A stretch of DNA of 64,000 nucleotides from Macrostomum lignano (taxonomy: Eukaryota), in NCBI GenBank assembly GCA_002269645.1, contig NIVC01001393.1:62001-126000 (forward strand), read 5' to 3'. Every line of letters begins with the position of its first letter. Position 1 is the stretch's first letter. The notes under the pieces are model-generated. The model was given only the letters and a program-made list of their open reading frames with translations. It was not told the origin of the DNA and ran no database searches. The position numbers and the translations under genes were made by a program. Of the stretch, positions 17,021 to 63,945 are shown piece by piece.

Positions 17021-17036
17021 GCCAATCAATTCTCAC

Positions 17037-19520: not shown

Positions 19521-19599
19521 TTTTTGAAGGTTTGTCTGGTGTTTGGTGATGATGAAGGTTAAATTTAAAGTCCAACAAAAGCATCTAAACCAAACTCAC

Positions 19600-19865: not shown

Positions 19866-19884
19866 CTGCGAGTTAGCGGGTTTA

Positions 19885-20285
19885 AGGTTAGCAATTTTAA
19901 GGATTGTGATTTTGAAGATTGGGATTCTAGAGATTGTGATTTTAGGGATTGGGATTTAAGGGATTGTGATTTTAGGGATTGGGATTCTAGAGATTGTGAT
20001 TTTAGGGATTGGGATTTTAGGGATTGGGATTTAAGGGATTGTGATTTTAGGGATTGGGATTCTAGGGATTGTGATTTTAGGGATTAGGACTTTAGGGATT
20101 GGGATTTAAGGGATTGTGATTTTAGGGATTGGGATTCTAGGGATTCGAATTTTAGGGATTCGGATTTTAGGGATTGGGATTCTAGGGATTCGAATTTTAG
20201 GGATTCGGATTTTAGCGATTGGGATTCTACGAGTAGGAATGGTATTTTAGTGATTGGGATTCTAGGGATTGATATTTTAAGGATT
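19885..20285. repeat. About 15-bp intronic repeat (GGGATTTTAGGGATT) rich in TTAGGG
   Basis: Fills most of the WNK intron 20360-19866. Confidence 0.92.
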
Positions 20286-20360
20286 AAGATCTTTAGGAAA
20301 GGGATTGTGAAGGATTATTTGTAAAAATTGTAGAGTCTCACAAAAAAGATAGGATCTCAC

Positions 20361-36200: not shown

Positions 36201-38754
36201 GAAAACTAGTGATAAATTCTTTGCTTCTTTAAAATCAAAAATAAATTAAAATAGTGAAAATTATTGCTAAAAACATAAATTTTGTGTCATTATTTTTAGA
36301 GATTTTTTTTTGTCAAAAATAAAAATTTTTGTAATATTTAAAAAAGATGTTTTGTACAAAAGCCTCTCTTAGAAAACTCAACTTGTGAAAACTGAATGAA
36401 CTTTTTTAGTAGAAACTTTGGGATAAATTTTAAGGAATTTTTTTCTTTTTGGCATACATTGGCCTACATTAAGCTAAGATAGGATTCTTGTTCTGGCGTA
36501 TACTACGACACAATCTGGACCCTGGTCGAATTGCTAATTGTGTCAATTCCAAATGAATTAATATGGAAATGATGTGTATAAAGTATGAATTGCTTCAATT
36601 TTTATATGAATTTTAATGTTAAAAAGATGTGTCCTAAATTTTTGGCGATTTCTCTTCTCTTGTGATTGAGGACAAAGAAGTGTCCAAATTTCCAGGAGTT
36701 TTGTGTGTAGTGCATTGAATATTCACTATAGGCCCTACAAAAAATATAGTGAATCACTATACAAAGCATTTTCATTCATTACCATTTTACCGATTGATGA
36801 CAAAGTATTATGAGTATTCAGCTAGTAATATTTGATATTCAGTATCTGAAAGCTTAAATCAATTCTTCATCATATATGACGACATGGAATATGACGATCT
36901 ACTAATTTAATTAGCAACCTAATTAACAACATACTCCATACTCGTAGTCGTACTTTATGCTTATACAATTGAAATATTGAGAAAATTACCTGTGTAATTG
37001 GTGGGATGGATAAAATTAATCTACATAGCATGGTGGCCCTAGTCCTATTAATTGCGCCAAGCGATATGACTTTAAAAAGTCCGATAGATAGCACTCTATG
37101 TAAATATGGAATTTAACTTAGCACGCTACGCTGGTCAAACGCGCGCCATTTGTATTAAATAGGTAAATCAAAATAGAAGCTGTTTTAAAATATAGTATGC
37201 AATACAAATTCTTGTTACAAATCATTTGGTTTATTTATTTCTGTGAAATTTTATAGACTTTTCAGTTGTAAATTCTATTATTTATGGACGAAATGAAAAG
37301 GCAAAGGAGGTCATAAATGCATATATACGCATGTTTGTTTTATGCATGCGTAGCGTATGTTAGTATATACATTTAATTGCTGGAAAAGAAGCAAATTTTC
37401 TTTTTGAGTAGCGAAAGTAATAATTATCATGCGTTCCTACTAGGCTCTTTAACCCCACTTAGCACCGCTAGGCCTTTTCAAATTAGTCTTTAGCAAACAT
37501 GTACGTGGATATAAGCTATATTCTGGACCAAACTGTAGACGTAGTCAAAGAAATCAGGGTGATGTATTTTTAGTACATGCCCATGCAGTTTTTAGGCTCA
37601 AATGGTGTAGGGGGTAGATGGAATACATGCATGTATTACAATTATAACATGAAATCATTAGCAGTCCATGTACATGTACATGTATGAACATAATGCAACT
37701 ATATATATGGGAACGGCTCTACATTTGCATGTTTTATTTTTTGTGAAGAAGAATTCCCAAATACAAGTGACGATTTAAGTCGACGGCAAATTTCGTACTC
37801 TGCACTGTATACCTGTACAGTACATACATATACAATACCTGTACCTGTATTCTGAATATCTGTACAATATTCCGACGTCGATAGACGTCCATGGCAAATA
37901 TGAGTAGGCACTTTTACAATATTTTGAAGGCGGCTGACGTATAAACCCTTTTTTCGCAAAAGATCATGTAGTGAGATACTTTTAGCTAGCGTTGGCATAA
38001 TGCAAATTCATTAATTTGCATCCGACGTCACAGGACATGGCAGATTGTTGTGGATAGTTAATTACGCACTTGTACATTATACGTACACGTATGGATTCCC
38101 ATGCAGTGTGCACCCAAAGTGCGCCCGAAGAGGCTGAAATTAGCCCCTTGTTGTTTAACTATAACAAGCCTCCATCAATCAATGCCTGATCCCAACCGTG
38201 TTAGCCTGCAGTGAAGCCGCTATATGGCAACGATACACGATGCTTGGTATTAGTCATTGGGGAAATGCGAATTCGTGTTTCACAGCCAACAAAAGAGTAA
38301 CTCATGATGATGAAGATGTAAATAGTAAAGTTTACATGCAATAGTTCAATTCAAACACGCGCTTGTGATGGGCAACTGGGTCTTTTTGTGACGATTGAGA
38401 GCTGCCTGCATACAGAATTAAAGCTGCAGGCTCTGGAAAGTCATCTGCTCTACATGCATTTGTAGCTAATAGCATGCGGTGAGTGCAAGTCATGTGATCT
38501 GACCTGCAAACAATCAACGAATGGACAATCTACATGTGGCCTTTGCTGTTTGCCCAGTCAAAGTATGCGCTGTTGCGTACAAAAAAGGTTTTAGCACTCA
38601 CGGCGCCTGGTGTGTGGAACTAATGACAAATCATTCGTAGCGAGAATTTTCATTTCCCGAATTCTGTAGCAATCAACACTGGTTGCTTCACCACAGAAAT
38701 GTAGCCATGATTTTTATTGGGGTTCTTAATGAGCTCCTGGCCTTACTCCTGACA

Positions 38755-41650: not shown

Positions 41651-41840
41651 ACTGGGGGGTCGCCACACACACCCTCAATTACCCCAGCTAATGCTGGCTG
41701 AATTTTACAGCTGGGTGAACTGAAGCAATGCAGAGTTAAGTGTCTTGCTCAAGGACACAAATTGTTCCAAGTGAGTCAAGAATCGAACCCCCGACCTTCA
41801 AGTCATGAGTCCGACGCTCTAACCACTAGGCTACAACCCT
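41651..41840 (-). mobile_element. tRNA-Met-derived SINE with CORE-like central domain, copy 1
   Basis: A box TAGCCTAGTGG, B box GGTTCGATTC, CTCAT anticodon region like tRNA-Met, then TGTGTCCTTGAGCAAGACACTTAACTCTGCATTGCTTCAGTTCACCC; homologous to 50790-50985. Confidence 0.82.
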
Positions 41841-45122: not shown

Positions 45123-45803
45123 CCTCTGCCATCTACAGCTTCTGTTGTAAGTAAAGATAGAGAATTGGACTTTGCATCGACGCATACGCAGCCACGGGGC
45201 AACTTCTATGGCTGCCAGAGGCACCTCATCGATCAAGTGTCGGAACACAGCTGGGCTGGGAGTTGGGTTGGTTTTTGTATCCTAAGCTAATCCACCCTGG
45301 TAACTAGCAGATCTCTCTACCTCTCCCCTCTCCTCTCTTGGCATTGGACCTTGCTGCCTACAATTGTCTTTGACTGATTTTTTCCTGCCCCTAAAGTATT
45401 CAAGGAGAAGCTTTGCAACTCCCAGCATAGTATGGCGCGTTTCCAGTCTCGTTAGGGGCGATTGCTGCAGGGGTCGAGAGGGCGATGGTAATGGAAAACT
45501 TTACCCCCATTGACCGTGACCCAAGAAACTGCGCACTTTATCCGCACAATTTCCATCTTCTGCGTTCAAGGCGGAGGCCGCAAACCGTTTAACCATTTAT
45601 CTTCCCACATTTTGGCAAGCACCAGATGCGCTACTCTGCCCTAGCGGTTTGACTTCGACGGCTTGCTTTCGTAAATGTGCCATTGGATGAATAATAGCTC
45701 TGCATGATAAATTATTGCACTTGTGGCCACAATTTTTCTTTCCAGGAGCAGAAATGCTGAACATTGTCTGAATAAGCGCCTCCTCTGCGTTCTGGAATGA
45801 GAA

Positions 45804-46267
45804 ATGTCCCAGCAAGGGCTGCTGTTCCTGCAATTGTTGACCGTTGCCATACGGTTGCTAGGGTCCGGCCGAGCCCTTATTCTATTCGACACTGAGTCAT
45901 CTGATCGCCCGACTAGGGTGCTGCACTTTCTCAGCGCTCCGGCCATAGACAGCGACTGCGACCGCGCCTCCCCGGAGGTGATCCCCATCGAGGGCTACTT
46001 CAAGCTGACCACGGCGCCGGCGCCACATGGCACCAAAAAACTTTGCCGAACTCCTCTGGTGCCGTCTGGCGCTCGAGTTGACGACCCGCGCGGCATCAGC
46101 TTCTGGTTCATGCGACTGCGAGTCACCCGGCTGGCCGCCGGACAGAAGCTGAGCATCGCCAACACCGACTATGAGGATCGGCACTCGATGAAAGTTGGCA
46201 ATGACCAGCTGATAGACCTCACTAGCGACTCGCATCGGTACCCAGTTGTGCTGTATCTGAAGTACAG
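45804..46267 (+). CDS. Type I membrane protein exon 1: signal peptide and most of a CUB-like domain
   Basis: MSQQGLLFLQLLTVAIRLLGSGRA hydrophobic leader; C...EGYFKL...C...ISFWF...KLSI pattern; donor AG|GTAAGA at 46268 (phase 2). Confidence 0.8.
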
Positions 46268-46339
46268 GTAAGAGTATAATATATTCTAATATAGGTTATA
46301 TATTATATACTCGTATTATATTACATTCTACACAATAAG

Positions 46340-46700
46340 AGAGCCGGATTCTCAGGACACTGAAGGAGCGGAGAGGCAGATTCTCAAGGACAGTGAAGGA
46401 GCGGAGAGGCAGATTCTCAAGGACAGTGAAGGAGCGGAGAGGCAGATTCTCAAGGACACTGAAGGAGCGGAGAGGCAGATTCTCAAGGACAGTGAAGGAG
46501 CGGAGAGGCAGATTCTCAAGGACAGTGAAGGAGTGGAGAGGCAGATTCTCAAGGACAGTGAAGGAGCGGAGAGGCAGATTCTCAAGGACAGTGAAGGAGC
46601 GGAGAGGCAGATTCTCAAGGACAGTGAAGGAGCGGAGAGGCAGATTCTCAAGGACAGTGAAGGAGCGTAGAGGCAGATTCTCAAGGACTCTGAAGAGAGC
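46340..46700. repeat. 33-bp intronic minisatellite (GAAGGAGCGGAGAGGCAGATTCTCAAGGACAGT)
   Basis: About 11 copies inside intron 46268-46846. Confidence 0.96.
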
Positions 46701-46846
46701 GGCAGCCCTCTTAATTGAGTGAATTTCGCTCCCACTGTCAACGCAGAATAATTTATCGGTTTGTCACTCTGCTCGAATGCATAAAGATACGCTCGAGTCA
46801 ACGTCATCAGTAATTGACTCTCATGACTTTTTCAATCTCCCCGCAG

Positions 46847-48212
46847 ATACGTCCGACTTTACTGGAGCAGCAGCGGGCCCGCCCGGCTCAACAACCCCGT
46901 CAACATCACGGCGGCCGCGTACGCCAAATACAAGGACGGCTTGAACGAGACGGTCCGGCAGGATCTCTGCAAGCGGCACGGCCACTCCTGGTGCCAGCCA
47001 AATCGGCAGGCCGCCGGCATCTGCCTGGCACCCGGCGGCTGCTCGCAACGCGATGATTGCTTCGACTCGTTCAACGATCCCGAGAGATGCCCTGTGTTCG
47101 GGAACCTGACTGGCTGGGGCAGCAGCGGCGCCGGCGGCCTCCTGCCGTCGGGTGCGTGGGTGCTAGACCGGCTCCGCTGGCTGGCGCTCGCCGCCCTACC
47201 GCTCGCGCTTGTCGCCGCTCTGGCGCGGCTATGCGCTCAGCAACGTCGGCTGGACATTGACGAGAACTACGACTACAAACCAGGCGACGACGGGGCCGAA
47301 GAGGCGGATGCGGCCGACAACGAAGCGGACGAAGAGGCCGACAATGATGAGAGGCCGCTGTCGGTTGCGGCAAGTGGAGGCGGGGGTGGCGGCAATGAAG
47401 CCTACTACTCCTACCCATCCTGCCCGCCAACCCCGCCGGCCCGGGCCGCCACCGTGGCCACTCTGGCTGCCTCAGCGACCGTCATTACTTCGCCATCGAC
47501 GCCGCCGCCGCCACTTCCGCCCATCAGGTCGACGCCAACCCCCAGCAGCAAGGCTAGCGATAGCGTTGACAGCGAGACCGGCGAACGAGATCGGCGCAGC
47601 AGTAGCAGCGGTAGCGGCAGTCAGCCGCCGCCACCGACGCCTCCGCCTAGAAGTCGACGACGAGGCAGCCGTCAGCTGCCGTCGGTGGACGAGGCGAGAG
47701 AGGAGAAAGAAACAGTCGTCAATATTGAGCTCGGCGATGTCTGCTTGCGTCGGAGTGTGCGGTCGCCAGCGGCGCCAGCGGCGGCGGCTGCCAGCGGCGA
47801 CTACACAGAGTGGCGCAGCCGACGTGCCTCCGTGCCGTCCGCTGCCGCCTCGTCGCGGTGCAGCTACACCCGGCTGCTGAACCAGCCATCGCCGGACACC
47901 ATCGAGGAGCTGCTCGAACGACCATCGGCAGCAGCAGAGTCGCCGGATCGGGTTGTGTACGCCCAGCTGGTCCTGCCGCCGCAGTCCTGCCTGCCGCGCC
48001 CGTCAGCACCGCCACGGATGAAACAGTCGGCGATGAAGACGCCTTCGTTGTTGCATTTCAAAGCTCCGTCGGCGCCGGTGGAGCGCAGCGGACGGGAGCG
48101 GCAGACGCAGATGGAGATGCGGGCGGTGGCGCCGAGGCCTCCACCACGAAGTCGTCGAGGCGAACTGCCGTCGGTGGTGGACCCGTACGATTTGCACTAC
48201 ATTGTGGTGTAG
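46847..48212 (+). CDS. Type I membrane protein exon 2: CUB end (RYVRLYWSS...ITAAAY), 6-Cys LDLa-like module, TM helix, Pro/Tyr-rich cytoplasmic tail
   Basis: Acceptor CCCCGCAG at 46846 in phase with exon 1; CKRHGHSWC...GICLAPGGCSQRDDCFDSFNDPERC; TM WLALAALPLALVAALARL; total 609 aa. Confidence 0.82.
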
Positions 48213-48414
48213 CGTGGCGGCCAATTCTGTACAGCGTTCCAAACCTGATGTACGATAGATAGTAATGTCAGTGATAGTACTATCTACTGATAGTGATCAG
48301 TAGTGATCTACTGATAGTGATCAGTAGATAGTACTGAGTCATTAGCTCACTTACATTTTTAATTAGTTGCCTTGCGAATGCATTCTGAAATTAGATAATA
48401 ACGTTTTAATTGAC

Positions 48415-49305
48415 CTTGGAGGCAAATTCTCAATCACTGTGGGAGCAGAGTGGCAGATTCTCAATCACTGAGGGAGCATAAAGGCAGATTATCAATCACT
48501 GACGGGAGCAGAAAGGCGGATTTTCAATCACTGACGGAGCAGAGAGGCAGATTCTCAATCATTTGGGGAGCAGAGAGGCAGATTCTCAAGCACTGAGGGA
48601 GCAGAGAGGCAGATTCTCAAGCACTGACGGAGCAGAGAGGCAGATTCTTAATCACTGAGGGAGCAAAAAAGCAGATTCTCAATCACTGAGGGAGCAGAAA
48701 GGCAGATTCTCAATCACTGAGGGAGCAGAAAGGCAGATTCTCAATCACTGAGGGAGCAGAGAGGCAGATTATCAATCACTGACGGAGCAGAGAGGCAGAT
48801 TCTCAAGCACTGACGGAGCAGAGAGGCAGATTCTCAAGCACTGACGGAGCAGAGAGGCAGATTCTCAATCACTGACGGAGCAGAGAGGCAGATTCTCAAG
48901 CACTGACGGAGCAGAGAGGCAGATTCTCAAGCACTGACGGAGCAGAGAGGCAGATTCTCAATCACTGAGGGAGCAGAGAGGCAGATTATCAATCACTGAC
49001 GGAGCAGAGAGGCAGATTCTCAAGCACTGACGGAGCAGAGAGGCAGATTCTCAAGCACTGACGGAGCAGAGAGGCAGATTCTCAAGCACTGACGGAGCAG
49101 AGAGGCAGATTCTCAATCACTGACGGAGCAGAGAGGCAGATTCTCAAGCACTGACGGGAGAGCGGAGAGGCAGATTATCAATCACTGACGGAGCAGAAAG
49201 GCAGATTCTCAATCACTGACGGAGCAGAGAGGCAGATTCTCAATCACTGACGGGAGAGCGGAGAGGCAGATTCTCAAGCACTGAGGGAGCGGAGAGGCAG
49301 ATTCG
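48415..49305. repeat. About 31-bp minisatellite (GAGCAGAGAGGCAGATTCTCAATCACTGAGG), related to the 33-bp array
   Basis: About 28 copies; shares GAGAGGCAGATTCTCAA. Confidence 0.95.
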
Positions 49306-49819
49306 CACATTCAGTGTGTGAGAGAGCAAGTTAAATATAATAATCTAGTCAAACAGATCCTTCAGAGTCTGACTTCTCTGTGTGATAAAAGCGCAGGAAA
49401 AAGCACAGTGTATTCGTTGCAGAAATATTTAGTATTCCAGTGCGCACTAAGCACGCCGTGTTATTCTGCAGCATCAAACGATTATCTGAAAATCGATCGC
49501 TCTATCAGTTCATTTTCGAGAGATCGCAGAGCGGATATTTACATTCGTTTCTGCAAATAAATGTGCAGTGTTAAATTTATGAACCAAACTAATTTTACTA
49601 CTTTGAGTAGAAATACGAGGATTTTGCTTGAGTTTTGTTAATTCAAAGTGAATTTTATTAATATTCATTGAAGTCTGATTGCTTAGCGATGAAATTCTCG
49701 CGATCCGCGTGAGTTCGAGTGCTGGCAGCGGATCGACTGTCGCATTGACTCTTTCTCGGCACCTTCATCTGGACGAAGAAGTCTGTTGGTTTGCTTGTTA
49801 CTTCTACGAGTATTGAATA

Positions 49820-50185
49820 AATTCTTCTCTCCTCTCATCTCTCTCATTTCTTCTCTCCTCTCATCTCTCTCATTTCTTCTCTCCTCTCATCTCTCTCATT
49901 TCTTCTCTTCTCTCCTCTCCTCTCATTTCTTCTCTTCTCTCCTCTCCTCTTCTCTCATCTCTCCACTCCTCTCCTCTAATCTCTAATCTCCTCTCTCCTC
50001 TTATCTCTCTTCTCTTATCTTTCATCTCATCTCTTCTCTACTCTAATCTCTCTTCTCTTATCTTTCTCATCTTTTCTCTCATCGCATCTCTCATCTAGCC
50101 TCTCGCCTCTCCTCTCTTCTACCATCTCTCATCTTTTCTTTCTTCTCTCTCCCCATTTCCCTCTCCTCTCCTCTCCTCCCTCATC
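49820..50185. repeat. CT-rich polypyrimidine low-complexity tract
   Basis: CTCCTCTCATCTCTCTC-type units. Confidence 0.9.
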
Positions 50186-50597
50186 TGGCCCGCAGCAATG
50201 CACTAGATTCTCTATCTGGCCCTTTAGGTAAAAAAAGTTGCCGAACCCTGCCCTACAGAAACCCATGACAGCCAATGGGAGACGGGATCTGCTCAACACT
50301 CTCCGTGCGGCTCATCAATTCTGAGCCAAGCGAAACTCGCTCCCAAAAGTACCGGGAAGGAGAGGAAAGAGGATTAATGTCGCGGGCAAGGAGAACAGCC
50401 CCATTCCATAGTTAATCCCGGGATTAGGATTGAAAAATGGAGAAGAGAAAGAGAAGCATAATAATGCGCCCAGCGCTCGGGCCGCGGTGATTCTGTCGCA
50501 GAAGGCAAATCTTAGCTGGGAAAAATAGCGGTCAAAAGATCCAAACAAAGGAGGATTTCTAATCGAAAAAGCGGAACATCAAAGAGCCACCAGTCTG

Positions 50598-50751
50598 ATG
50601 TGCGGGAAATTTTCAATGCTGCTGCTGCTGGCGCTACCTTCGCTGCTCATCTGGCCGGGCCTGGGCGCAGCGTCGCGGGCCAAAAATCTTGGCACCGCCG
50701 CGTCCGGCCGGGCCTCGGACACCGGACACTCCGGACTGTCCGGACCGGACG
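50598..50751 (+). CDS. nAChR alpha-type subunit exon 1 (signal peptide MCGKFSMLLLLALPSLLIWPGLGAA...)
   Basis: Hydrophobic leader; donor G|GTAACT at 50752 (phase 1) matches the next acceptor; alternative ATG at 50616. Confidence 0.75.
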
Positions 50752-50787
50752 GTAACTATCCAGCTTCTCGATAATGGCGAAGACTTG

Positions 50788-51074
50788 GCGAGGTTGTAGC
50801 TTGGTGGTTAGAACGTCTGACTCATGACTTAAAGGTCGGGGGTTCGATTCCCGACCCACCTCGGAAAAATTTGTGTCCTTGAGCAAGATACTTAACTCTG
50901 CATTGCTTCAGTTCACCCTGTAAAATGCTGTAAAATGGGTGCCAGCATTAGCTGGGGTAATTGAGGGTGTGTGTGGCGACCCCAGCCTTCAGATGCGCCG
51001 CGCAATGGCTGCGGCTGAGCTGTCGGTTGCACATCTGGCTATTGGGGCAGCTGTAATCAATTATTATTATTATT
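50788..51074 (+). mobile_element. tRNA-Met-derived CORE-like SINE, copy 2, with (ATT)n tail, inside nAChR intron 1
   Basis: A box TAGCTTGGTGG, B box GGTTCGATTCC, CORE-like GTGTCCTTGAGCAAGATACTTAAC...GTAAAATGGG, ends in ATTATTATTATTATT. Confidence 0.85.
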
Positions 51075-51135
51075 AGTTGGCAAAAGCTCAATACATTAAT
51101 GAGGAGAAAATTGCTCAAACCCGTCCCGGACACAG

Positions 51136-51314
51136 GTGTCACTCGGCTGACCGCTGAGTGCGCCGATCACTGCCAACGCAGGCGCTGCTCCAGTGAGCAG
51201 GCGGCCAAGGAGGCCCTGCTGTGCGGCTACGACCGAACCTCCAGGCCGGTGATCAAGGACAGCACGCAGATTCGCGTGCACATAGCTGTGGCGCTGTTCC
51301 ACATACTGGACACG
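51136..51314 (+). CDS. nAChR exon 2 (…EQAAKEALLCGYDRTSRPVIKDSTQIRVHIAVALFHILDT)
   Basis: Y...RPV...V.V motif of the Cys-loop receptor N-terminus; CAG acceptor at 51135, donor ACG|GTAGGC. Confidence 0.88.
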
Positions 51315-52462
51315 GTAGGCTGGGCACTGAATAAATCACAGTTGAAATGACACCAAAAACCCGAGCCATCTAGATTCTGAGAGGACCATTTTAAGCTGAA
51401 ATCCTGCGTTGATTCAAGTGCAATGTTTTCTGATGTTTCAAAGGTGTTTACGGCTGCCGAATATCTTTGAGTGTTACATAATCTGTCTGATTGCAGTAGA
51501 GCTTTGATTGGCTTTCATGTGCTTCTGAATAAAAAGAGGTTTTGAATGCTTTTTCTGTTTTTGCTTGTAGTGGTTACATTTAAATGGATCATCAGGTCTT
51601 CGGCCCATGGACCAGTTCAGGTAGTGCATGGACACCGACTGTGTACTTTGTAAGGAATGTTGTTGACAACGCTGAATTTCAAGGCTATCCAGACTCCAAG
51701 AGTATTTACCAGCTCGTCACATATAAGAAATCCCACGCTGTATGCCTTTCCTGTGACGTCACCTGAAATATATCCATATTTGACAGCCAGTATGCATCTC
51801 GCAACTGTACCAAATGTTGCCTGACCATCTGAGGCGTCTCTTGGTTGTTTGCGTACACTTTTACGAGTTAGTTGATCCAATTTGTTGAGACAAGAACTGA
51901 GTCCTGTCTTGTTTGCTCTAGCGTCAAGAGCTAACCTTTGAGTTAATACCTGTGCAGACTCTGTGCGAGTTGTTATTTTGCCCTCGATTGAACTCGCTGC
52001 GCTGTGGGTGTCCAGTAGTCTTCCTATTCTTCTCCTTCAAGTTGTACTCGGGGTTTGAGACAGGGGAAAGAAGTGGAGCAAAATATTATGCGTAAGCTTA
52101 GCTTAATATGTCGGATTTCCAACAATAAATTCCACGATCAACATGGCCGGGTCTTATTCTGGCTGAATAGTAACTGACAAGGGCATCAAGCACTTGCCTG
52201 CCAGCTTAGCCATGCCAATGGACAGGCCCTAAAAATGGTCTAGTAATTGCATGTAGCTCCTTCACATAGGGACATTTTCCTTAATCTCTTGGGACCTGTC
52301 TCGAAATGAGGACTTGGATTAATTTTCTCAGCTCAGCTCAGGGTCTGAGCGTAGAGAACTCCAACCCCCCCCCCGTAAGCAGCACAGGTACGCGACCTGG
52401 ACTTGAATGCTTAAGAATCCATGAGCATCTGAAAGTGACTGTTTTCGATAACTGCATTGCAG

Positions 52463-52507
52463 GACGAGAAGCACCAAACCTTTTCTGCTTTGATGTCAAT
52501 CCGGCTG
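52463..52507 (+). CDS. nAChR exon 3, 45 bp (DEKHQTFSALMSIRL)
   Basis: TTGCAG acceptor, CTG|GTGAGT donor; DEKxQ motif and the 45-bp exon length typical of nAChR genes. Confidence 0.9.
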
Positions 52508-52919
52508 GTGAGTGCTTCACGGTTTCCCTGGCCTTTTTTAGGCTGTGAATTCTTCTATAATCTGTCTGAGCATACTATGAAGCAAACTATTTAAGTCTAA
52601 CGTTTAATTTCGTTGAGTAGACTATGATGCAGCGTGTAGACGAGAGAAAAATGGCCTACTACTCATTGCTCATAGTCGCTCCAGTCGCATCCAGCGCTCC
52701 TGTCGCCTCACAGTCATAGTTCCATACAGACTAATTGCCTTCGCTTACAGGCGCAGTTCCGGCTCGCCATTAACTGACTGGCAGCTTCAAAAATAAGCAG
52801 ATGACAGAAAATGCTGACATTGCTTTCAGTTAGCAACTGCGGATCTATAGCTGTTATAACTGGGCGGACTGGGTTAGCGAGAGATAAACTGACATTGTCA
52901 CGGTCACGCTCAGATAGCT

Positions 52920-53176
52920 GGGAAACTGGGACACTGGGACACTGAGACACTGGGACACTGGAACACTGAGACACCGGGACACTGGGACACTGAGACACTG
53001 AGACACTGAGACACTGAAACACTGAAACACTGAGACACTGAGACACTGGGACACTGGGACACTGGGACACTGAGACACTGAGACACTGAGACACTGGGAC
53101 ACTGGGACACTGAGACACTGGGACACTGGGACACTGGGACTGGGACACTGGGACACTGAGACACTGAGACACTGGG
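52920..53176. repeat. 8-bp repeat (GRGACACT)n
   Basis: Direct periodicity. Confidence 0.95.
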
Positions 53177-53285
53177 AAAATTCTCCCCACTTGCGGTGCA
53201 TCTAATCTTGCTGCATTAGATCCGCTTTCTTTGTCGCTTTCCGTTCCCTTTTTGACACAAAGCTCCCTTCTAAAAAACCTTCAAG

Positions 53286-53395
53286 CGCTGGACAGACGAA
53301 TACCTGACCTGGGATCCGGAGGACTTCAACGGCACCACAAATTTGCATATCCCATCCAGTGCGATCTGGACTCCGGACATCGTTATCTCTAATAG
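53286..53395 (+). CDS. nAChR exon 4, 110 bp (RWTDEYLTWDPEDFNGTTNLHIPSSAIWTPDIVISNS)
   Basis: W.D..L.W.P and W.PD motifs; TTCAAG acceptor, AG|GTGAG donor. Confidence 0.93.
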
Positions 53396-53639
53396 GTGAG
53401 CCAAGCATTTTCATCAAATTGAATTTCTCTGATATTGCAGAGCAAAAAAGTTGCCGCAAACATTTCTTTGATGTCAATTTAATTGGCGTGCGCTCTGATA
53501 AGTACTATTCACCCCCACGTAATTGCACTTACCGGCTCCGATAGACTTCAGCTGGGCTATTAGTATAGAGCTAAAATGTTTCATGTTTTATTGCTTTCAC
53601 GGTCCAAATTGATGCCAATTTTAAAGTTGAAGAAATTGC

Positions 53640-53754
53640 ACGAAAATTGGTCGGGAGGTTGTTGGGCGATTCACCCATGTGAGTGCCAACCCCCCAGACA
53701 CAGAGAGTGTACATGCCTGACGATTGGAGAGTCAGGGCCGCTGTACACCCTGTG
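53640..53754 (+). repeat. Unclassified dispersed repeat, copy D
   Basis: CAGAGAGTGTACATGCCTGACGATTGGAGAGTCAGGGCCGCTGTACACCCTGTG. Confidence 0.8.
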
Positions 53755-55244
53755 TTCCTGCCGTACTTATCCACTGTCGCCTTGACAAGGACCTAGTGGT
53801 TCTAAGTGGTCATTCTGTTGGCTACAGATACTATTTGAAAAGCTATTTACATACTGGGACAGTGTCTGTCATATTTGGCCTCAAGGCACTTATTAAACTC
53901 CGTACAGTCCTCGGTGCCCCGGCAACTGACGCATCACACGAGTTGATAAGATCAGCTGGGGCGAGGCAGCCCTGCAGTCTCAGCAAATCAATATTCGAAT
54001 GTCAAGCTTCTCAAAAATTTCAGAGCAGCCGTCGGAATACGACTTTGATGTCATCCACAATCGATACGTCATCCATGTCTTTATATGATATGAACTGCGC
54101 ACTCTATAACTTGGCCATTGGATCGTTGCAAACCTCATTAGGGCCGAGTTATTCTTATAATTATGCCCTGCAGCCCTTCATCATATTTTGTACAGCATTC
54201 CGGTCAGGACGATGCCTGTCGTCCAACAAGACACATCTTGACTTAACTGGCACTAAACCTCAGAAAAAACTGAACAATAATTCTTTTTGAAGCACACAAA
54301 GCTGACTTTTAACACCAAATAATGGTCCGTACTAATGCATGGAGTTCTAAAAATAGCAGGAGCTGCTGAAGTTCACTGGATCCTTGACCTCACAGAAGTC
54401 TATAGACAAAAGCCAGTTCACCAACAGTTATGCGAGGCCTAAAGTTATATGGAACCTTGAAAGAGACACCAATGATCCTGGCAGCCTTCTGCACGGTCCA
54501 ATAAACTAAGATGGGAATCACTGGCAGATTCACATACAATGAAACAATACGTGAAAGAAATCAGCTCGTCTTGTGTCCCGATGCTATATTTAGATATCCA
54601 TGAAATTTCCTTGTGACATCCCTGGACTGGAAACGAGTCGGGAAAATTCCTATGCTTTGCTACAAAATGCAATGCCCGAAAATTCAATCGAAAATGCGTT
54701 TCAAGTGAATGCTGAGACCCAATTGCTGGGAGTCGCAGAGAACAATGACGACAGGATACAAAACTGCGGGTAGACAGAGCAGGTTTCAAAAAAGTACATA
54801 AAAGACTCGGATGAAAGCAGCTCAATAGAGACTCAGGCCCAGCTTCCTAAACAGGGTGAGTCTTTTACAATAAATACGGAAAACGCGACGCTTTGAGTCG
54901 GGTGCACATTGAGTAAGACGCGTTTCTTTTCAATGAAACAATTTTTTTCTTACTCAACCGTCCTCAACTTTTGTTTCTTTCATCTTGGTAGATAGCGTAG
55001 CTTTCTCAGCATCCGCAAAGCGATTGAATATTGGTGAAGCGTGAACTCCGCCACTTGATGAAAAGGGAATAGAAAAAAACCATTACTGCACTTTGTATTG
55101 CTGCTGATACAGCTATTTGAATCGGCTTGCCATGTCTCTGGGGGGGGGGGGTTGCGAGGAGAACATTTTCAGGTTTGAATTTTATCTGTAAGCACAGTTT
55201 TTTCGTGCTTCTGGGTTAGTCGGCAGACAGAAAACTCATTCCTT

Positions 55245-55825
55245 TGAATAAGCGCCACTGCCCCCAGCCCTTTGATTAAGCGCCACTGCCCCCAGCCCTT
55301 TGATTAAGCGCCACTGCCCCCAGCCCTTTGATTAAGCGCCACTGCCCCCAGCCCTTTGATTAAGCGCCACTGCCCCCAGCCCTTTGAATAAGCGCCACTG
55401 CCCCCAGCCCTTTGAATAAGCGCCACTTTCCTCAGTCCCTTAATTAAGCGCCGCTATCCCCAGTCCCTTGAATAAGCGCCACTTTCCTCAGTCTCTTAAT
55501 TAAGCGCCGCTATCCCCAGTCCCTTGATTAAGCGCCACTACCCCAGGTCCCTTGATTAAGCGCCGCTATCCCCAGTCCCTTGATCAAGCGCCACTTCTCT
55601 CAGTCCCTTGATTAAGCGCCACTACTCCAGTTCTTTGATTAACGCCAGTGCCCCCAGTTCTTTGATTGAGCGCCCCTACCCCCAGTCCTTTGATCAAGCG
55701 CCGCTGCCCCCAGTCCCTTGATTAAGCGCCACTTCCCTCGGTCCCTTGATTAAGCGCCGCGGCCCCCAGTCCTTTGATTAAGCGCCCCTATCCCTGCAGT
55801 CTTTTGATTAAGCGCCGCTGCCCCA
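55245..55825. repeat. 28-bp intronic minisatellite (GATTAAGCGCCACTGCCCCCAGCCCTTT)
   Basis: About 20 copies that diverge progressively. Confidence 0.93.
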
Positions 55826-56614
55826 GTTGTTTCCCTCTCGCCTACAAACTCACTGAGCATATTAAAAAGTTTCATAATATTAAATTAAAAAGTAAAATAA
55901 ATAATCTTACACTATAAACTCACTTCCCATGTACTTTTGAACTCCTGCAATTCTAACCATATCCAGTCAGTCAAAGAGAAAATCCAATACAATCTGAAAT
56001 CAGTCATTCAACTCGATTTACGCCAAACATATAGGCAAATTTTAATCCACTGAAACTCTCAAGTTCTCAAGTGCTCGGCCCAGGTGCAGTTTTCCCAGCA
56101 ACTGAGGCGGGCATGAGTCGCATGCAGGTGACGCTGCCGATAGGCCTCAGCTAAGCCCTACGAGCGTATTTACAGCCTTTAAAACTCCAATGCATCATCC
56201 GAAAGCTATGGTGTGGACAGACAATTTTTCTCCCGACCAACACAATGAACTGAAATTTCCATTATAAAGTCGGCTTGCCAGATATGACAAGAGAAAAGTC
56301 TGCTGCTCTGCGAGGCTCTAAAAATAGAGCATGAAAAGAAGCTGCAGAGCAGATGAAGAGAGTACAATGACTGAACGGGAAATAAGTACTTCATCTTTGT
56401 GTCCTCTCGCAATGAAATAACAATTTATGGGCAATAATAATAATCGCATCAGTATTTAATTTTAAATTAAAAGCACACAGGTTCTTATCCGTGTGCTGCC
56501 ATCTGCACACAGAGCTACCCAAACGCTTAAATTATCAATAAGAGTTCCCACGTGATGCAGTCTACAAAATTAGGTAATTTTTACTATTCTTTCCCACTGA
56601 TAATTTTATTTATG

Positions 56615-56790
56615 TAGCCAGATAACAGCCGAACCCCACCTCGAAGCTGATTGGCTGCCGAAGCCCCCAGTCTGGCTGCTGTAGCCAGATAACATCCGAA
56701 CCCCACCTCGAAGCTGATTGGCTGCCGAAGCCCAGTCTGGCTGCTGTAGCCAGATAACAGTCGAACCCCACCTCAAAGCTGATTGGTTGT
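56615..56790. repeat. About 65-bp tandem repeat, 2-3 copies (GTAGCCAGATAACAGCCGAACCCCACCTCGAAGCTGATTGG...)
   Basis: Direct repeats seen in the sequence. Confidence 0.88.
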
Positions 56791-56906
56791 TGAACTTACT
56801 GAAGCCAAATCCAACTTTAAATGTGTTTTTCCCTGACCAGACGTTCTAGATTTATCAGATAATTAATAATCCGTTTTCCATATGATTTTACTTCTCTTTA
56901 CTTTAG

Positions 56907-57150
56907 CGCCGACGAGAGCAGCAAAAAGTTCATGACGACAAATACAGTGGCCTGGTACAATGGCAGCGTGCTCTGGATGTTTCCGGCCGTGGTCAAGGTC
57001 ACGTGCACCCTGAATGTCCGCTATTTCCCATTCGACCGGCAGACTTGCATGATAACCTTCATCAGCTGGACTTATCACCTGTTTGAGGTGGATGTGTGGC
57101 ACGACGAATCAGTTGATGCAAATAAAAATTACTATAGGGAGAATAACCAG
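56907..57150 (+). CDS. nAChR exon 5 with Cys-loop (CTLNVRYFPFDRQTC) and loop B (SWTY)
   Basis: Canonical 15-residue Cys-loop; TTTAG acceptor (phase 2), CAG|GTGTGC donor. Confidence 0.95.
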
Positions 57151-57214
57151 GTGTGCCCTTGTATGCCTTTTGCATCGTATGCGACACGATTTGCATCGTT
57201 ATTTGTGTCATAGG

Positions 57215-57500
57215 TCAGTCTCAATTAACCGGAAGCAGGTCATCTTAATAAGCCGGAAGTAGGTTAGTCTCAATGAACCGGAAGTAGATTAGTCTCAATG
57301 AACCGGAAGTAGATTAGTCTCAATGAACCGAAAGTAGATTAGTCTCAATGAACCGGAAGTAGATTAGTCTCAATGAACCGGAAGTAGGTTAGTCTCAATG
57401 AACCGGAAGTAGGTCAGTCTCAATGAACAGGAAGCAGTTCATCTTAATAAGTCGGAAGTAGGTTAGTCTCAATGAACCGGAAGTAGATTAGTCTCAATGA
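57215..57500. repeat. 25-bp intronic minisatellite (GTCTCAATGAACCGGAAGTAGATTA)
   Basis: About 11 copies, most containing ACCGGAAGT. Confidence 0.93.
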
Positions 57501-57621
57501 TCATGAGCCTCATGGGTTCATGACCCGTAGATAGTTCAAGTTTCATGACCCCGGGTGTGGTTCAGCCTTTATGAAATATTTATAGTTCAGAAAATTGTAC
57601 TCCTCTTTATCTCCCCCGCAG

Positions 57622-57919
57622 GAGTGGAACGTCTCGGCCATAAAATTTTCTAGAACGGAGGGTGTCTACGCCTGCTGCAAGGAGCCGTGGCCGGACGTTA
57701 CCATAGTGATCGACATGACTCGACGCTCGTTGTTCTACGTATTTAACCTGATATTTCCCTGCCTGCTGATGTACGTGGCCAGCTTTCTTGGCTTCTTCCT
57801 GCCGATTGAAACGGGAGAAAAAGTCAACTTGGAGCTGACCATCCTGCTGGCTCTGGTGGTGTTCCTCCTCATCGTTGGGGACACACTGCCGCCAACGCCT
57901 GACGCCATTCCGCTTGTGG
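57622..57919 (+). CDS. nAChR exon 6: loop C vicinal cysteines (YACCKEPW), M1 and M2 (GEKVNLELTILLALVVFLLIVGDTLP)
   Basis: Vicinal CC defines an alpha-type subunit; GEK before M2 indicates a cation-channel-type linker; CCGCAG acceptor, G|GTGAGT donor; M3/M4 exons not found in the window. Confidence 0.95.
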
Positions 57920-59236: not shown

Positions 59237-59401
59237 TATAGATATTTTGTTGTACTTTTATTTGCGGCTTGGTTTGCCATGATTTTACCATAGATTAATT
59301 TCCTTTTACAGTTCTTTCTCGCAGTTAAGTTTCTCGCCCCAATCCTTTCATCTTTTAACTCATAAAATATATTTTTCAAGTTTACTTGTAGTTTCACTAC
59401 A
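59237..59401 (+). repeat. 5' LTR (165 bp, TATAG...CTACA)
   Basis: Matches 63780-63945 except for one substitution (CCAATCC vs CCAAACC) and one T in a T-run. Confidence 0.95.
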
Positions 59402-59471
59402 AATTGGTCCGGTGAGGCGGATGAGATAAAGATATTACTCGCATACTCAGTACTCACAGAAGACAAATCCA

Positions 59472-60383
59472 ATGACGGACAGTGCCAGCAACAATTCCGC
59501 TCCTACGCCAACACCTACAACCACGCAAGCCGCACCAAGTTCAGCCGCACCAGTGGTTACAACTGCAGTAGGAAACGCCGCCGACACTGCTACCGTCTCC
59601 CTGGCTCACCTGAAGCTACCAACCTTCTATCGCAACAACCCGGAAGCATGGTTCCTCACCCTGGAGGCCCAGTTTATGCCCAACAGGGTGACCAACGAGA
59701 CTGCCAAATTTTACCACCTAGTCTCTCATCTACCGGAGGATATTGCGGCCCTGCACTTGTCCGCTCAGACTCCGAAACAGTACGAACAACTGAAAACAGC
59801 GATAACATCAACTCTGCAGAAGTCCAAGCAGGAGAAGGTTTCGGAAGTATTGCAAGTCTCGGACCTCGGAGGAGACAAGCCATCGATTTTCATGCGCAAG
59901 CTCCGGAGCAAGATGGAGCAGTGCCAGATACAGCCCGATGAGGAACTCCTCAAGGCCACACTGATGCGCTGTCTACCACAGGACCTTCGTATCGCACTTT
60001 CGGGATTCCAACAGCAGTCATCCCAGCAAATTTCCGAGATTGCTGACTCAATGTTGATCGTCAGAGGCCTTAGCTCTCCATCACCAGCGACAGTTTGCCC
60101 AATTCAGCAGACCAGTGCAGACCGGGCACACCAACAGCGCTTTGAGCAAGCTCCACAGCGACAAGCACCTGCTGGTAAGCCCACTGGAACAGACCCATTT
60201 AAGGCTGGCCAACGCCCCGTTGTTTGCCGCTCACACCTCTACTATGGCCGCCGTGCTCGGTCGTGTCGCCCCTGGTGCCAGTTTCCCAAGGACAGCTCGC
60301 GTCCGATCCGAGTGCTGCATCCCAATGAAAAAACGCCATCTCAGTCGCGTTCATCATCACCTTCTCGACAGCCGGAAAACTAA
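59472..60383 (+). CDS. gag: Gypsy Gag (303 aa)
   Basis: LKLPTF...PEAWF...EAQF and C-terminal CRSHLYYGRRARSCRPWC motifs of gypsy Gag. Confidence 0.9.
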   Translation: MTDSASNNSAPTPTPTTTQAAPSSAAPVVTTAVGNAADTATVSLAHLKLPTFYRNNPEAWFLTLEAQFMPNRVTNETAKFYHLVSHLPEDIAALHLSAQTPKQYEQLKTAITSTLQKSKQEKVSEVLQVSDLGGDKPSIFMRKLRSKMEQCQIQPDEELLKATLMRCLPQDLRIALSGFQQQSSQQISEIADSMLIVRGLSSPSPATVCPIQQTSADRAHQQRFEQAPQRQAPAGKPTGTDPFKAGQRPVVCRSHLYYGRRARSCRPWCQFPKDSSRPIRVLHPNEKTPSQSRSSSPSRQPEN

Positions 60384-60417
60384 GTCGCACTGCGACCGAG
60401 GTCGCGGTGCGCAGTGC
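60374..60417 (+). promoter_or_regulatory. Candidate -1 programmed ribosomal frameshift signal (G_GAA_AAC plus 12-bp GC-rich stem)
   Basis: Heptamer 60374-60380 just before the gag TAA; -1 frame open into the protease; stem 60387-60398 pairs with 60405-60417. Confidence 0.7.
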
Positions 60418-63400
60418 CGAGATTCCATCGACCACCTGTTTGGAGTTAGACGTTAAAATCAACAATACCTACAGCAAGTTTCTTGTGGATACCGGAGCCT
60501 CGGTTTCCATTGTTGCACCTCACCTCGTTAACGCACTCGTTCAAGATACGAACGTTCGTTTAATTACTGCTACCGGAGCCGCCATACCAGTTCGCGGGTC
60601 GGTCCTACTGGATGTCTCAATCCGCGGTTTGCGTCGCGCCTTCCAGTGGACCTTTCTCGTGGCCTCGGTGGTAAAACCCATCATCGGTTACGACTTCTTG
60701 GCTCACCATGGGTTAGTTGTCGACTGTCAGCGCAAACACGTTCGAGACTCAGAAACAAGACTGTCTACTGTTACCTTGTCAATTTCAAATGTTCATTGTG
60801 GCCCGTTCACTGTGTCGCTAGAACTGCCACCCAACCTGGATACTCGGACGAGTACGCTGTTGACAAAGTTTGCAGATTGTTTTTCTTTCGTTGAAGGCGG
60901 AGCCCTTCCGCCAGCTTCAGAGGTCAAGCACGACACTGTTCACCGACTAGACACTGGCAGTGGACAACCGGTTCACTTGCGACCCCGGCAACTGCACCCT
61001 GCAAAACTACAGGCTGCAAAGTAGGAGTTTCAGCATCTAATCGATGCTGGCTACCTCAGACCTTCCTCAAGCGCTTGGGCGTCACCCCTCCACATGGCAC
61101 CCAAGGGAGCTGGCTGGCGTCCGTGCGGTGACTATCGTGAATTGAACAAACGAACAAAGCCGGACAACTATCCGGTTCCACATATTCAAACCTTCACTCG
61201 GTACCTACACGGAGGCACTGTGTTTTCAAAGTTAGATCTTGTTCGTGCCTTTCATCAAATTCCAGTCGCCGAAGAGGATATTTGCAAAACCGCTATCACT
61301 ACACCGTTTGGATTGTTCGAGTACACACGCATGCCCTTTGGCCTAAGGAATGCAGCACAAACATTTCAACGCTTCATCGACTCTGTTTTTCACGGACTTC
61401 CATTCGTCATCTCTTACATCGATGATGTCCTGATATTCTCGAAGACTCGAGAGGACCACTACTCACATTTGGAACAAGTTTTGGACCACCTAAGAACACA
61501 CGGCCTGCAGGTTCATTTGAAGAAGTGCGAGTTCTTTCAGTCCGAGGTAGATTTCCTTGGCCATCGCGTGACTCCTGAAGGAATAAGACCTCTTTAGAAG
61601 AAGATCCAAAAAATCACTGACTGGCCGACACCCACGGATTCGAACGCACTTCGGCGCTTCCTCGGCGTCGTCGGTTTCTACCGCCGATTCGTTCCCAACT
61701 TCGCTGATCGCATCTGTCCGCTGCAGGACCTACTCACTGCATCACTACAGTCAGCAGGAAACTTTCAATGGACAGAGCAGCATCAGAAATCCTTCGAAAA
61801 CATCAAACAAGCTCTCTCAGAGAGACTACTGCTGCATCATCCGAACCCAAGCTGTACTGCGTACCACCTGTACACTGATGCCTCAGCCGACTGTGTTGGT
61901 GCCGTTCTGCATCAAACCTCTCCAACCGGAACGTCACCTCTTGGCATGTTCAGCAAGAAGTTGTCGTCATCTCAAAGGACGTACAGCACGTTCGACAGAG
62001 AACTACTCGCGGCGTACCTGGCAGTGTTGCACTTCCGCAGCCTCATTGAAGGACTGAGCATGACCTTGTTCACCGATCATAAACCACTAGCTCAGGCCTT
62101 CCACGCCAATCGCACCACTACATCAGATTGCAATCAGCGCTACTTGACCGTCTTGTCCGAGTACGTGGCAGATGTCCAATACATTCGCGGTGCAGACAAC
62201 GTAATAGCTGATGCTCTTTCTCGACTGCCTGACTTCCCAGTGAATGATCACGTGTCCAACATCGCAACAGCCACTGCAGTCGCTGCCCCATCAAGCCAAT
62301 TCCCTGTTGACCTTCCCAGTATCGCTGAAGCACAACGACCGAAGTCGTTCTCACCTGCACCAAATATCCGATCGTATTCTCAGGACAAAGACGTCGTCGT
62401 TTGGTGTGAGACGTCAACGCCGTATCCTCGTCCGATCATTCCGCCGTCTCTCCGCGACGCCGTGATTGCTTCCTTCCATCGACTTGGTCATTTCGGCTAC
62501 CGTAAAACAGCAAAACTCATCACAGAACGCTACTTTTGGCCCGGAATGCGCAAGTCCATCAAGACCTACTGCTGGAACTGCCAGGACTGCCAACGGAGTA
62601 AAGTCACTCGCCACACTGTCTCCCCGCAACAGGCCTTCGCACTACCATCAAATCGCTTTGAGGTGGTACACATCGATATTGAGGGACCACTTCCACCAGC
62701 TAATGCCACCACCTTTTTTTTGGCCACCAGTCTGCCCGCTACCTTCTCACGATGGTCGACCGCTCGACTGGCTGGCTAGAAGCTACTCTACTGCAATCAA
62801 TAACCGCGGAAGTAGTCGCCCATGCATTCGTCTCGTCCTGGGTCTCGTGCTACGGAGTGCCACTGTATGTAATCACTGATAGGGGACGCCAGTTCGAATC
62901 AGAATTCTTTCTCTCGGTCTCGTCATCAATTGGTTTTCATCGATTACGCACAACGGCGTACCACCCTCAAACCAATGGCAAGGTCGAGCGAGCCCATCGC
63001 ACCCTGAAGACGATGCTACGCGCTCGAGGCAATGACTGGCTGACAGACCTACCTGTAGCTCTTCTCGCGATGCACGTTGCACCTGACGACCAAGGAGTAT
63101 CACCGTTCACCAGGGTTACAGGAGAGCTTCCGATGGTTCCGCGCGTTCTAACTTCCGAACCACTCGCCCCAACGGACATCCGGACACGGCTGCAGGAACT
63201 GCTGACAGAGCTACCGAATCCACACGCGACGACGCATGAACCACGGAGCTACATACCCAAGGACCTGAAAATGGCTGAATTCGTCTGGTTTCGAGTCGAT
63301 CGCGTGCGGTCGCCGCTCGAGGCGCCGTACTCAGGACCGTATCGCGTTAAACAGCGAACCGACAAGTTCTTCGTTATTTTCCTACCGTCAGGCAACACCG

Positions 63401-63591
63401 AGTCTGTCTCTATCGATCGCCTCAAGCCGGCGCGACTGTCGTCTCCAAAGCCTGCTGTTAAGCCGGCCGCGAACACGCTGCCGGAAAAAGCCGCCAAACC
63501 AGAGGAAACGGTGGACTCATCACCTCCTAGAGCGACCTATAGCGGGCGCCGAGTCCAGTTCCGACGCCATAATGATTACATTTATTATTAA
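60377..63591 (+). pseudogene. pol: Gypsy Pol (protease DTG, RT YIDD, RNase H TDAS, integrase HHCC and DDE) with TAG stops at 61022 and 61595 and a frameshift near 62700-62735
   Basis: ORFs 60407..61024, 61094..61597 and 61946..62779 share one frame and are separated by single TAGs; 62752..63591 continues the integrase in another frame. Confidence 0.92.
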
Positions 63592-63779
63592 CCTTCTAAT
63601 ATGTAATGTTTACTGACCATTCTTCGCACTATTCTCAATATTTCTAAATATTCGACCTCTCGTAAACCATTTTTTTATTGCATTCCCACCACTTCGTTTT
63701 GATCGTTGAGCCATCCCACCATCTTTGACTTCAGTTACAGTATCTTTTCCCCGTGCTCCGCATTTGGAGGGGGGAGTCA

Positions 63780-63945
63780 TATAGATATTTTGTTGTACTT
63801 TTATTTGCGGCTTGGTTTGCCATGATTTTACCATAGATTAATTTCCTTTTACAGTTCTTTCTCGCAGTTAAGTTTCTCGCCCCAAACCTTTCATCTTTTA
63901 ACTCATAAAATATATTTTTTCAAGTTTACTTGTAGTTTCACTACA
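63780..63945 (+). repeat. 3' LTR (166 bp, TATAG...CTACA)
   Basis: Follows the polypurine tract at about 63766-63776; followed by the GGGG TSD. Confidence 0.95.

Follow-up and report, generated by a model that had tools for sequence, protein, structure and literature searches.

A flatworm-restricted LDLa-type membrane protein gene lies head-to-tail with an alpha7-like nicotinic receptor gene in apparently inherited linkage

Here we describe two neighboring genes on the forward (+) strand of a 64-kb stretch of animal DNA (hereafter the window), which is very rich in tandem repeats. The upstream gene (gene A) encodes a predicted single-pass membrane protein, and the downstream gene (gene B) encodes a subunit of the nicotinic acetylcholine receptor (nAChR). 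An initial annotation had proposed a 609-residue protein ending at 48212, an nAChR alpha subunit starting at 50598 on the same strand, and a 2.4-kb gap made up largely of tandem repeat, and all three were recovered in our analysis. Read as two exons (45804-46267 and 46847-48212) joined across a GT..AG intron, gene A yields exactly 609 amino acids (aa) and has its stop codon at 48210-48212. Gene B opens with an ATG at 50598 and matches the ligand-binding and membrane domains of nAChRs, with a Cys-loop and a YACC motif. Between them lie 2385 nt (48213-50597), of which ~1308 nt (55%) are tandem or simple repeat.

A single open frame of 609 aa was obtained from the junction 46267/46847 only; neighboring junctions failed. 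Exon 1 of gene A (45804-46267) supplies the ATG, a signal-like N-terminus and the first part of a beta-rich ectodomain (aa 1-155), and it ends in phase 2 at the donor AG/GTAAGA, as read directly from the DNA. Residues 90-155 of this exon could be aligned with both homologues from Macrostomum lignano (A0A1I8FBY0 and PAA69274.1), and the trematode homologues carry clear signal peptides at the equivalent N-terminus. The intron (46268-46846, 579 nt) contains a 33-bp x 11 tandem repeat at 46339-46702. Exon 2 (46847-48212) encodes the remaining ectodomain, a degenerate LDLa-type module with six cysteines (46968-47090; aa 196-236, CKRHGHSWCQPNRQAAGICLAPGGCSQRDDCFDSFNDPERC), a predicted transmembrane (TM) segment followed by QQRR (47175-47243; about aa 265-287, in a hydrophobic stretch at about aa 263-287), and a low-complexity tail that runs to the stop codon. 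The intronic array has a counterpart just past the stop (48419-49304, 31 bp x 28). Both contain a common 15-mer core, GAGGCAGATTCTCAA, in the same orientation (35 matches vs. 0.03 expected), which was found nowhere else in the 64 kb; exon 2 is thus bracketed by related arrays.

The TM segment is the sole strong Kyte-Doolittle peak of the gene A protein (2.19 over 19 aa at aa 267) and aligns with a hydrophobic segment in all homologues. Three N-glycosylation sequons fall within the first 262 residues, and the 320-aa tail is largely composed of proline, serine, alanine and arginine. Two YxxPhi motifs can be discerned in this tail by eye, YTRL (also present in M. lignano A0A1I8FBY0, as SYTRL) and YAQL. 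The protein ends in ...YDLHYIVV, the gene A part of A0A1I8FBY0 in ...YDSNYIVV and the Clonorchis homologue in LLL. From this topology, we infer that gene A encodes a type I membrane glycoprotein, in which a signal peptide would be followed by a ~170-aa beta-rich N-terminal domain, an LDLa-type knot, one TM helix and a long disordered cytoplasmic tail. Such a protein could serve as a cell-surface receptor or adaptor, with a tail that may control sorting, endocytosis or scaffold binding.

To place gene A among known proteins, we searched exhaustively with aa 1-299 against 1.84 billion representatives using HMMER. Six proteins were recovered in total, one of which, a repeat protein aligned in nine short stretches, was treated as spurious. 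Two of them, PAA69274.1 and UniProt A0A1I8FBY0, are from M. lignano, whose matches stood at E = 7e-39 and 8e-34, and the others were one Clonorchis sinensis cluster, one Schistosoma turkestanicum protein and one anonymous Logan contig. All of these homologues are labeled ‘hypothetical’ or ‘unnamed’ and a literature search found no mention of their identifiers. When the full-length protein (609 aa) was used in a word-indexed homology search, nothing was returned, the low-complexity tail having probably swamped the candidates. As the query of a further search, the family alignment brought up a single protein (P0122), and in a metagenome scan it found no relatives. As judged from these sequence matches, gene A is a member of a small, unnamed and undescribed family seen only in flatworms, and the delineation of this flatworm-restricted membrane protein family is a firm gain of the analysis. 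Its M. lignano member PAA69274.1 is a 233-aa hypothetical protein annotated on contig NIVC01001335.1 (10001-10702), where we found a partial, intron-less copy of the ectodomain (aa ~100-280) in which an inserted tandem repeat (SVNRSLSVTQSGNRSL...) separates the LDLa module from the TM segment. This copy looks like a dispersed fragment in an unrelated context and may be a retrocopy.

We next examined the six-cysteine module, which the initial annotation had called LDLa-like. Its cysteines are spaced as in LDLa repeats over ~40 residues (C196-x7-C204-x9-C214-x5-C220-x5-C226-x9-C236), and all six are invariant across the family, together with W203, D224 and F227-D228 (a Trp before the second Cys and a D-C-F-D motif). 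When scored against a hidden Markov model (HMM) built from LDLa repeats in the PDB, the trematode and Logan modules reached 20-23 bits and none of 2000 Cys-fixed shuffles scored as well. The window module reached only 4.7 bits, a score equaled by 83 of the 2000 shuffles. The Pfam family Ldl_recept_a (PF00057) matched the trematode and Logan modules at 15.7-21.2 bits, below its cut-off of 24.1, and Pfam gave nothing for the gene A protein itself, even at E<=10. The best PDB match of the family profile was the LDLa repeat of LDLRAD3 (E = 0.016). In alignments, the acidic Ca2+ cluster of LDLa repeats (D-C-x-D-x-S-D-E) reads DDCFDSFNDPERC in the window, DDCFDLFSEPSRC in M. lignano and DGCFDGGSDEVGC in trematodes, and the S-D-E triad is lost from both Macrostomum-type sequences (window FDSFNDPERC vs. 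trematode FDGGSDEVGC). The module of gene A is therefore LDLa by descent, in degenerate form. Because the trematode homologues score as LDLa and the window copy scores low, the membership of the latter follows by transitivity, and the earlier call holds by homology and not for the score or the acidic cage of the window copy. Since the SDE calcium cage has been lost in the Macrostomum lineage, the knot would probably act as a rigid spacer rather than as a Ca2+-dependent ligand clamp. The family offers, as a second firm gain, a clear example of LDLa decay within a single family.

The N-terminal domain had been described as CUB-like, giving a proposed order of signal peptide, CUB, six-cysteine (LDLa) module and TM segment. 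Here the signal-like N-terminus, the LDLa-type module and the single TM segment stood, and the CUB domain was not recovered. Pfam at E<=10 gave no CUB (PF00431) match in the window protein or in any of five homologues, and no CUB-bearing chain was among the hits of the family profile in the whole PDB at E<=10, with Neto2 chains among those covered. We also built a CUB HMM from eight PDB CUB domains (cubilin, PCPE-1 and neuropilin-1) and scored it with filters off; the window domain obtained -1.3 bits, a value reached by 505 of 2000 shuffles. A comparison with CUB by hhalign gave a probability of 0.4% for the whole family. CUB domains carry four cysteines in two disulphides (C1-C2 and C3-C4) on a ten-stranded jelly-roll beta-sandwich, and the N-terminal domain of the window protein has two cysteines only (C52 and C81). 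Two AlphaFold2 runs on a six-sequence alignment produced beta-rich models of low confidence (predicted local distance difference test, pLDDT, 48 and 55), and Foldseek matched these low-confidence models to no PDB entry at E<=1e-3; the entries returned were generic jelly rolls, MAM domains and, at rank 14, a BAI3-CUB/C1q entry. Given the low confidence of the models, these matches were not used as evidence for any fold. Across Pfam, PDB profile search, hhalign, HMM scoring and AlphaFold/Foldseek, CUB was thus not recovered, and the ~170-aa domain has no detectable family.

Gene B lies on the + strand and could be assembled from six exons whose phases agree and whose splice sites are canonical, encoding 343 aa. 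Exon 1 (50598-50751) carries the start codon and signal peptide and ends at the donor G/GTAACT in phase 1, which fits exon 2. Exon 2 (51136-51314), located by tblastn of annelid homologues, encodes the N-terminal helix and beta1 of the ligand-binding domain. Exon 3 (52463-52507) is a conserved 45-nt exon, DEKHQTFSALMSIRL; in a scan of AG..GT-flanked open exons of 42-48 nt against the homologues it scored 37 and all others scored -5 or lower. Exon 4 (53286-53395) covers the loop A region (...IWTPDIVISN), exon 5 (56907-57150) the Cys-loop CTLNVRYFPFDRQTC and loop B (SWTY), and exon 6 (57622-57919) loop C (YACC), TM1, TM2 and GEK at the inner mouth, ending in phase 1. Only the 5' two-thirds of the gene falls within the window, and the exons for TM3, the intracellular loop and TM4 lie beyond it. 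The assembled protein matched Pfam Neur_chan_LBD (PF02931; E = 5e-53) and Neur_chan_memb (PF02932; E = 1e-12), human alpha7 at E = 2e-64, and annelid subunits at 58-67% identity.

Because gene B combines a C-x13-C Cys-loop, a YACC loop C with vicinal cysteines and a GEK inner ring, we classify its product, on sequence features, as a cation-selective, alpha-type, alpha7-like nAChR subunit. With vertebrate alpha7 and the spiralian alpha7-like expansion it has in common the Cys-loop, the YxCC loop C, the GEK ring and the 45-nt exon 3. It differs from alpha7 at loop A Y93 (S), loop D W55 (S) and Y195 (W), such that three of the five aromatic-box positions are aromatic. With two aromatic-box residues replaced (Y93 and W55), the subunit probably needs a partner subunit or has an atypical pharmacology. 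A further difference is an unusual Cys-rich N-terminal extension in exon 2 (51136-51200), ECADHCQRRRCSSEQ (ECADHCQRRRC), ahead of the canonical N-terminal helix. This extension is conserved in the fused M. lignano model A0A1I8FBY0 (KCSDHTALRRTCSNEQ).

Intron 1 of gene B contains a tRNA-like sequence (50790-50870, +) with the T-arm GGTCGGGGGTTCGATTCCCGACC, and a diverged second copy lies upstream at 41774-41796 (-). Neither ARAGORN nor Rfam called a tRNA here, and the sequence is probably a fragment of a tRNA-derived short interspersed nuclear element. Past exon 6, a 56-bp tandem array is followed by a young long terminal repeat (LTR) retrotransposon (59237-63919, +), which begins ~1.3 kb downstream of the exon in the same orientation as the nAChR gene. 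Its terminal direct repeats (59237-59376 and 63780-63919) are 140 nt long and 99% identical, and in a piecewise search parts of the element matched an aspartyl protease, RVT_1 and an integrase core, in that order. The element presumably sits inside the intron that hides the 3' exons of the receptor.

We then asked if the adjacency of genes A and B extends to related genomes. The M. lignano gene model A0A1I8FBY0 (1148 aa) contains a gene A orthologue at aa 125-298 (42% identity, E = 7e-40), then a long tail to ...YDSNYIVV and, ~45 residues further on, a match to exon 2 of the nAChR gene (aa 618-667 against 51153-51299; tblastn E = 6e-5). The ~40 aa between ...YIVV and this match showed nothing significant when compared with nAChR exon 1 in another frame. 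The simplest reading of the model is that two adjoining genes, in the same order and orientation, were merged by the gene predictor. Linkage in M. lignano is read from this protein model, which was matched to no contig, and by this measure the adjacency and orientation of genes A and B appear to be conserved there. The synteny sought in related genomes thus appears to have a counterpart in M. lignano and not in trematodes, whose orthologues had no nAChR exon inside them or within 10 kb, a limited test given the size of trematode genes (the orthologues span 65 kb in Clonorchis and 27 kb in S. turkestanicum). The locus of PAA69274.1 on NIVC01001335.1 also had no nAChR within 10 kb. It was set aside and not counted against synteny, because it is a partial, intron-less fragment in an unrelated context that has nothing else in common with the window. 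Six short further loci with nAChR exons held no relative of gene A.

As a whole, the locus is best explained, with a confidence that goes somewhat beyond even, as two separate head-to-tail genes, one encoding an orphan LDLa-type protein and the other an alpha7-like nAChR, in inherited microsynteny. We consider microsynteny shared with M. lignano more likely than a functional pairing of receptor and auxiliary subunit. The adjacency would then be an inherited arrangement, in which the two genes may nonetheless be transcribed from one unit. Several observations weigh against this reading. The linkage has been conserved across sequences that are only 43-46% identical. The Logan member of the family was borderline against the CUB HMM, with only 11 of 2000 shuffles scoring as well, and a trematode-only profile reached 2.2% (P = 0.021) in hhalign, with an alignment that keeps register over the C-terminal half of the CUB domain. 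Trematode members also keep four cysteines in a CUB-like order with longer spacing (33/36/27 residues). The N-terminal domain may therefore be a very divergent CUB, which we regard as a lead; if it is, the analogy to NETO and LEV-10 gains weight. The motifs in the tail of gene A were picked out by eye only.

Among the alternatives, an operon survives best. Genes A and B would then be expressed from one polycistronic pre-mRNA resolved by spliced leader (SL) trans-splicing, and their functions would not necessarily be related. Best hits, with no identical match among them, put the window in or near Macrostomum, most likely in a species similar to but other than the sequenced M. lignano strain. 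The initial annotation had made co-transcription conditional on a trans-splicing host, and SL trans-splicing and operons are indeed in use in M. lignano, where an operon is defined by a repeat-adjusted distance of <1 kb, the same orientation and an SL trans-spliced downstream gene (PMC8629364). Operon spacers in this species are inflated by repeats, and the modal spacer is ~100 bp (PMC8629364). In the window, A and B have a strand in common and no gene intervenes. The repeats of the gap (48270-48327; 48419-49304, 31 bp x 28; and the TC-rich 49823-50186) reduce the distance from stop codon to ATG to ~1.08 kb when subtracted, and the distance between transcript ends would be less. Thus, the orientation agrees with the definition and the spacing is borderline against its 1-kb limit, although even after repeat removal the gap is ten times the modal spacer. 

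Signals within and around the gap are similarly mixed. AATAAA occurs at 49556 and 49816, and acceptor-like sites occur at ~50188-50194, 50253-50258 and ~50494-50500. The last of these, TGTCGCAG, lies upstream of gene B with no ATG between it and 50598, and an acceptor-like TTCCAG (45741-45746) lies upstream of the gene A ATG. Such hexamers are, however, common by chance, and gene B could have a promoter of its own in a CCAAT-like box and the unique sequence at 50190-50597. The fusion of A and B by the gene predictor in M. lignano would fit co-transcription, but errors in the underlying assembly, which is prone to them, may have produced this fusion as an artefact of prediction. A scan of the window did not find the M. 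lignano SL sequence, and Rfam and tRNA scans of the window were negative. We conclude that the ~1.08-kb spacing, the AATAAA signals and the acceptor-like sites speak neither for nor against co-transcription, and taken together we hold an operon to be unlikely. Many flatworm and nematode operons hold genes that are not necessarily functionally related. On the other hand, C. elegans des-2/deg-3 is an operon for two co-assembling nAChR subunits, so that co-transcription of nAChR components does occur among animals with trans-splicing.

The second alternative is that the gene A product serves the neighboring nAChR as a lineage-specific subunit with an auxiliary or clustering role, in the manner of LEV-10 or NETO: its ectodomain would contact the receptor, its tail would anchor the complex to a scaffold, and the conserved linkage would reflect co-regulation. 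We rate this reading as quite unlikely. LEV-10 has five CUB domains and an LDLa in a type I ectodomain; its CUBs cluster the receptor, its LDLa is dispensable and the ectodomain alone rescues (PMC9083331). In NETO, SOL-2 and Drosophila Neto an LDLa is accompanied by two CUB domains, and NETO2 ends in a class II PDZ ligand (PMC9083331). The order of ectodomain, LDLa, TM segment and tail in gene A matches the membrane-proximal half of NETO/SOL-2 (PMC9083331), and the hydrophobic C-terminus (YIVV; LLL in Clonorchis) resembles the NETO2 ligand (PMC9083331). Same-strand adjacency conserved in M. lignano adds to this picture, as does a receptor that has lost two aromatic-box residues and may rely on partners. 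Essential nAChR partners are known among small single-pass proteins, for instance EAT-18, which is unrelated to CUB and whose gene is overlapped by the lev-10 locus (PMC7173930), and LDLa-containing receptor auxiliaries are present in the PDB (8v14, ‘NMDA receptor auxiliary protein’).

Against these points, CUB, the receptor-binding element of LEV-10 and NETO, was undetected by any method, and the LDLa is dispensable in LEV-10 (PMC9083331), so an LDLa in common carries little functional weight. The family profile has no sequence similarity to Neto2 in the PDB, there was no nAChR within reach of the trematode orthologues, and the adjacency was chosen after the fact from a genome-wide scan. The auxiliary-subunit idea is accordingly a conjecture built on adjacency and a partial architectural analogy. 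In its most elaborate form, a flatworm-specific protein whose N-terminal domain is an orphan (possibly an ultra-divergent CUB) and whose LDLa has decayed would act as a dedicated nAChR auxiliary or clustering subunit, with the two genes kept linked across Macrostomum and perhaps co-transcribed as an SL operon; this we judge very unlikely.

A comparison with known systems delimits the analogy. NETO1/NETO2, Drosophila Neto and C. elegans SOL-2 resemble gene A as type I proteins with a beta-rich domain, then an LDLa directly outside the membrane and then a cytoplasmic tail, the C-terminus of which may bind PDZ scaffolds (the class II ligand of NETO2 and, by eye, YIVV in gene A). In contrast to gene A, with its one N-terminal domain lacking a CUB signal and its LDLa lacking the acidic Ca2+ cage, they have two bona fide CUB domains and their partners are glutamate receptors, not nAChRs. 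NETO genes are not known to be genomically linked to receptor genes. LEV-10 is likewise a single-pass type I protein with an LDLa, and it has the functional tie to a nicotinic receptor that was proposed for gene A. It differs in having five working CUBs, where the gene A product combines a single orphan domain with a very long tail, and its locus overlaps eat-18, the gene of another nAChR partner, and not a receptor gene. LDLRAD3, the best structural-database sequence match of the six-cysteine module, is also single-pass and has a tyrosine- and proline-rich tail, yet its LDLa repeats are canonical and Ca2+-binding, it has no large beta-rich N-terminal domain and the similarity is confined to the ~40-aa module. 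The likeness to LEV-10 and NETO suggested by the initial annotation was not supported: no sequence relationship was found, and gene A belongs to neither family because the defining CUB features of both fail. What it has in common with them is only the membrane-proximal LDLa, the single-pass topology and the hydrophobic C-terminus.

Lastly, gene A could be a decaying, non-functional copy in which a long GC-rich frame is open by chance, a reading prompted by the 61% GC of the exon 2 region, further long open reading frames (ORFs) of 223 aa and 150 aa in the other frames, the degenerate LDLa module and the fragmentary copy in M. lignano (NIVC01001335.1), but hardly credible given that the 609 aa read across one clean GT..AG junction contain signal peptide, ectodomain, TM segment and tail in the right order, that every family-invariant residue is retained, and that the extreme C-terminal motif ahead of the stop is conserved with M. 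lignano.

Were gene A nonetheless to modulate or cluster the receptor, flatworms would have an nAChR partner of a new class. If it were a dedicated subunit kept together with the receptor gene across Macrostomum, no earlier case of such a receptor/auxiliary pair in genomic linkage would precede it. The trematode orthologues (Clonorchis and Schistosoma) would then be worth testing as co-factors. Flatworms include major parasites, and drugs are aimed at the cholinergic receptors of the phylum; flatworm receptors are often hard to express heterologously because accessory proteins are missing. The gene pair is directly testable in the transgenic model M. lignano.

Elsewhere in the window, a multi-exon protein kinase gene lies at ~13291-21209 (-), with a Pkinase match at 17033-17389 (E = 5e-25), a WNK-like N-lobe identified by eye at 20277-20600, and Q-rich, low-complexity exons. 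It is unrelated to the kinase that adjoins the M. lignano fragment locus on NIVC01001335.1. Piggybac-type (piggyBac) transposase ORFs occupy 27651-29357 (-) and match DDE_Tnp_1_7 (E = 1e-28) split over adjacent frames, probably as a decayed or domesticated copy. The G+C content drops sharply to 27-31% at 34001-38000, compared with ~45-50% in the rest of the window.

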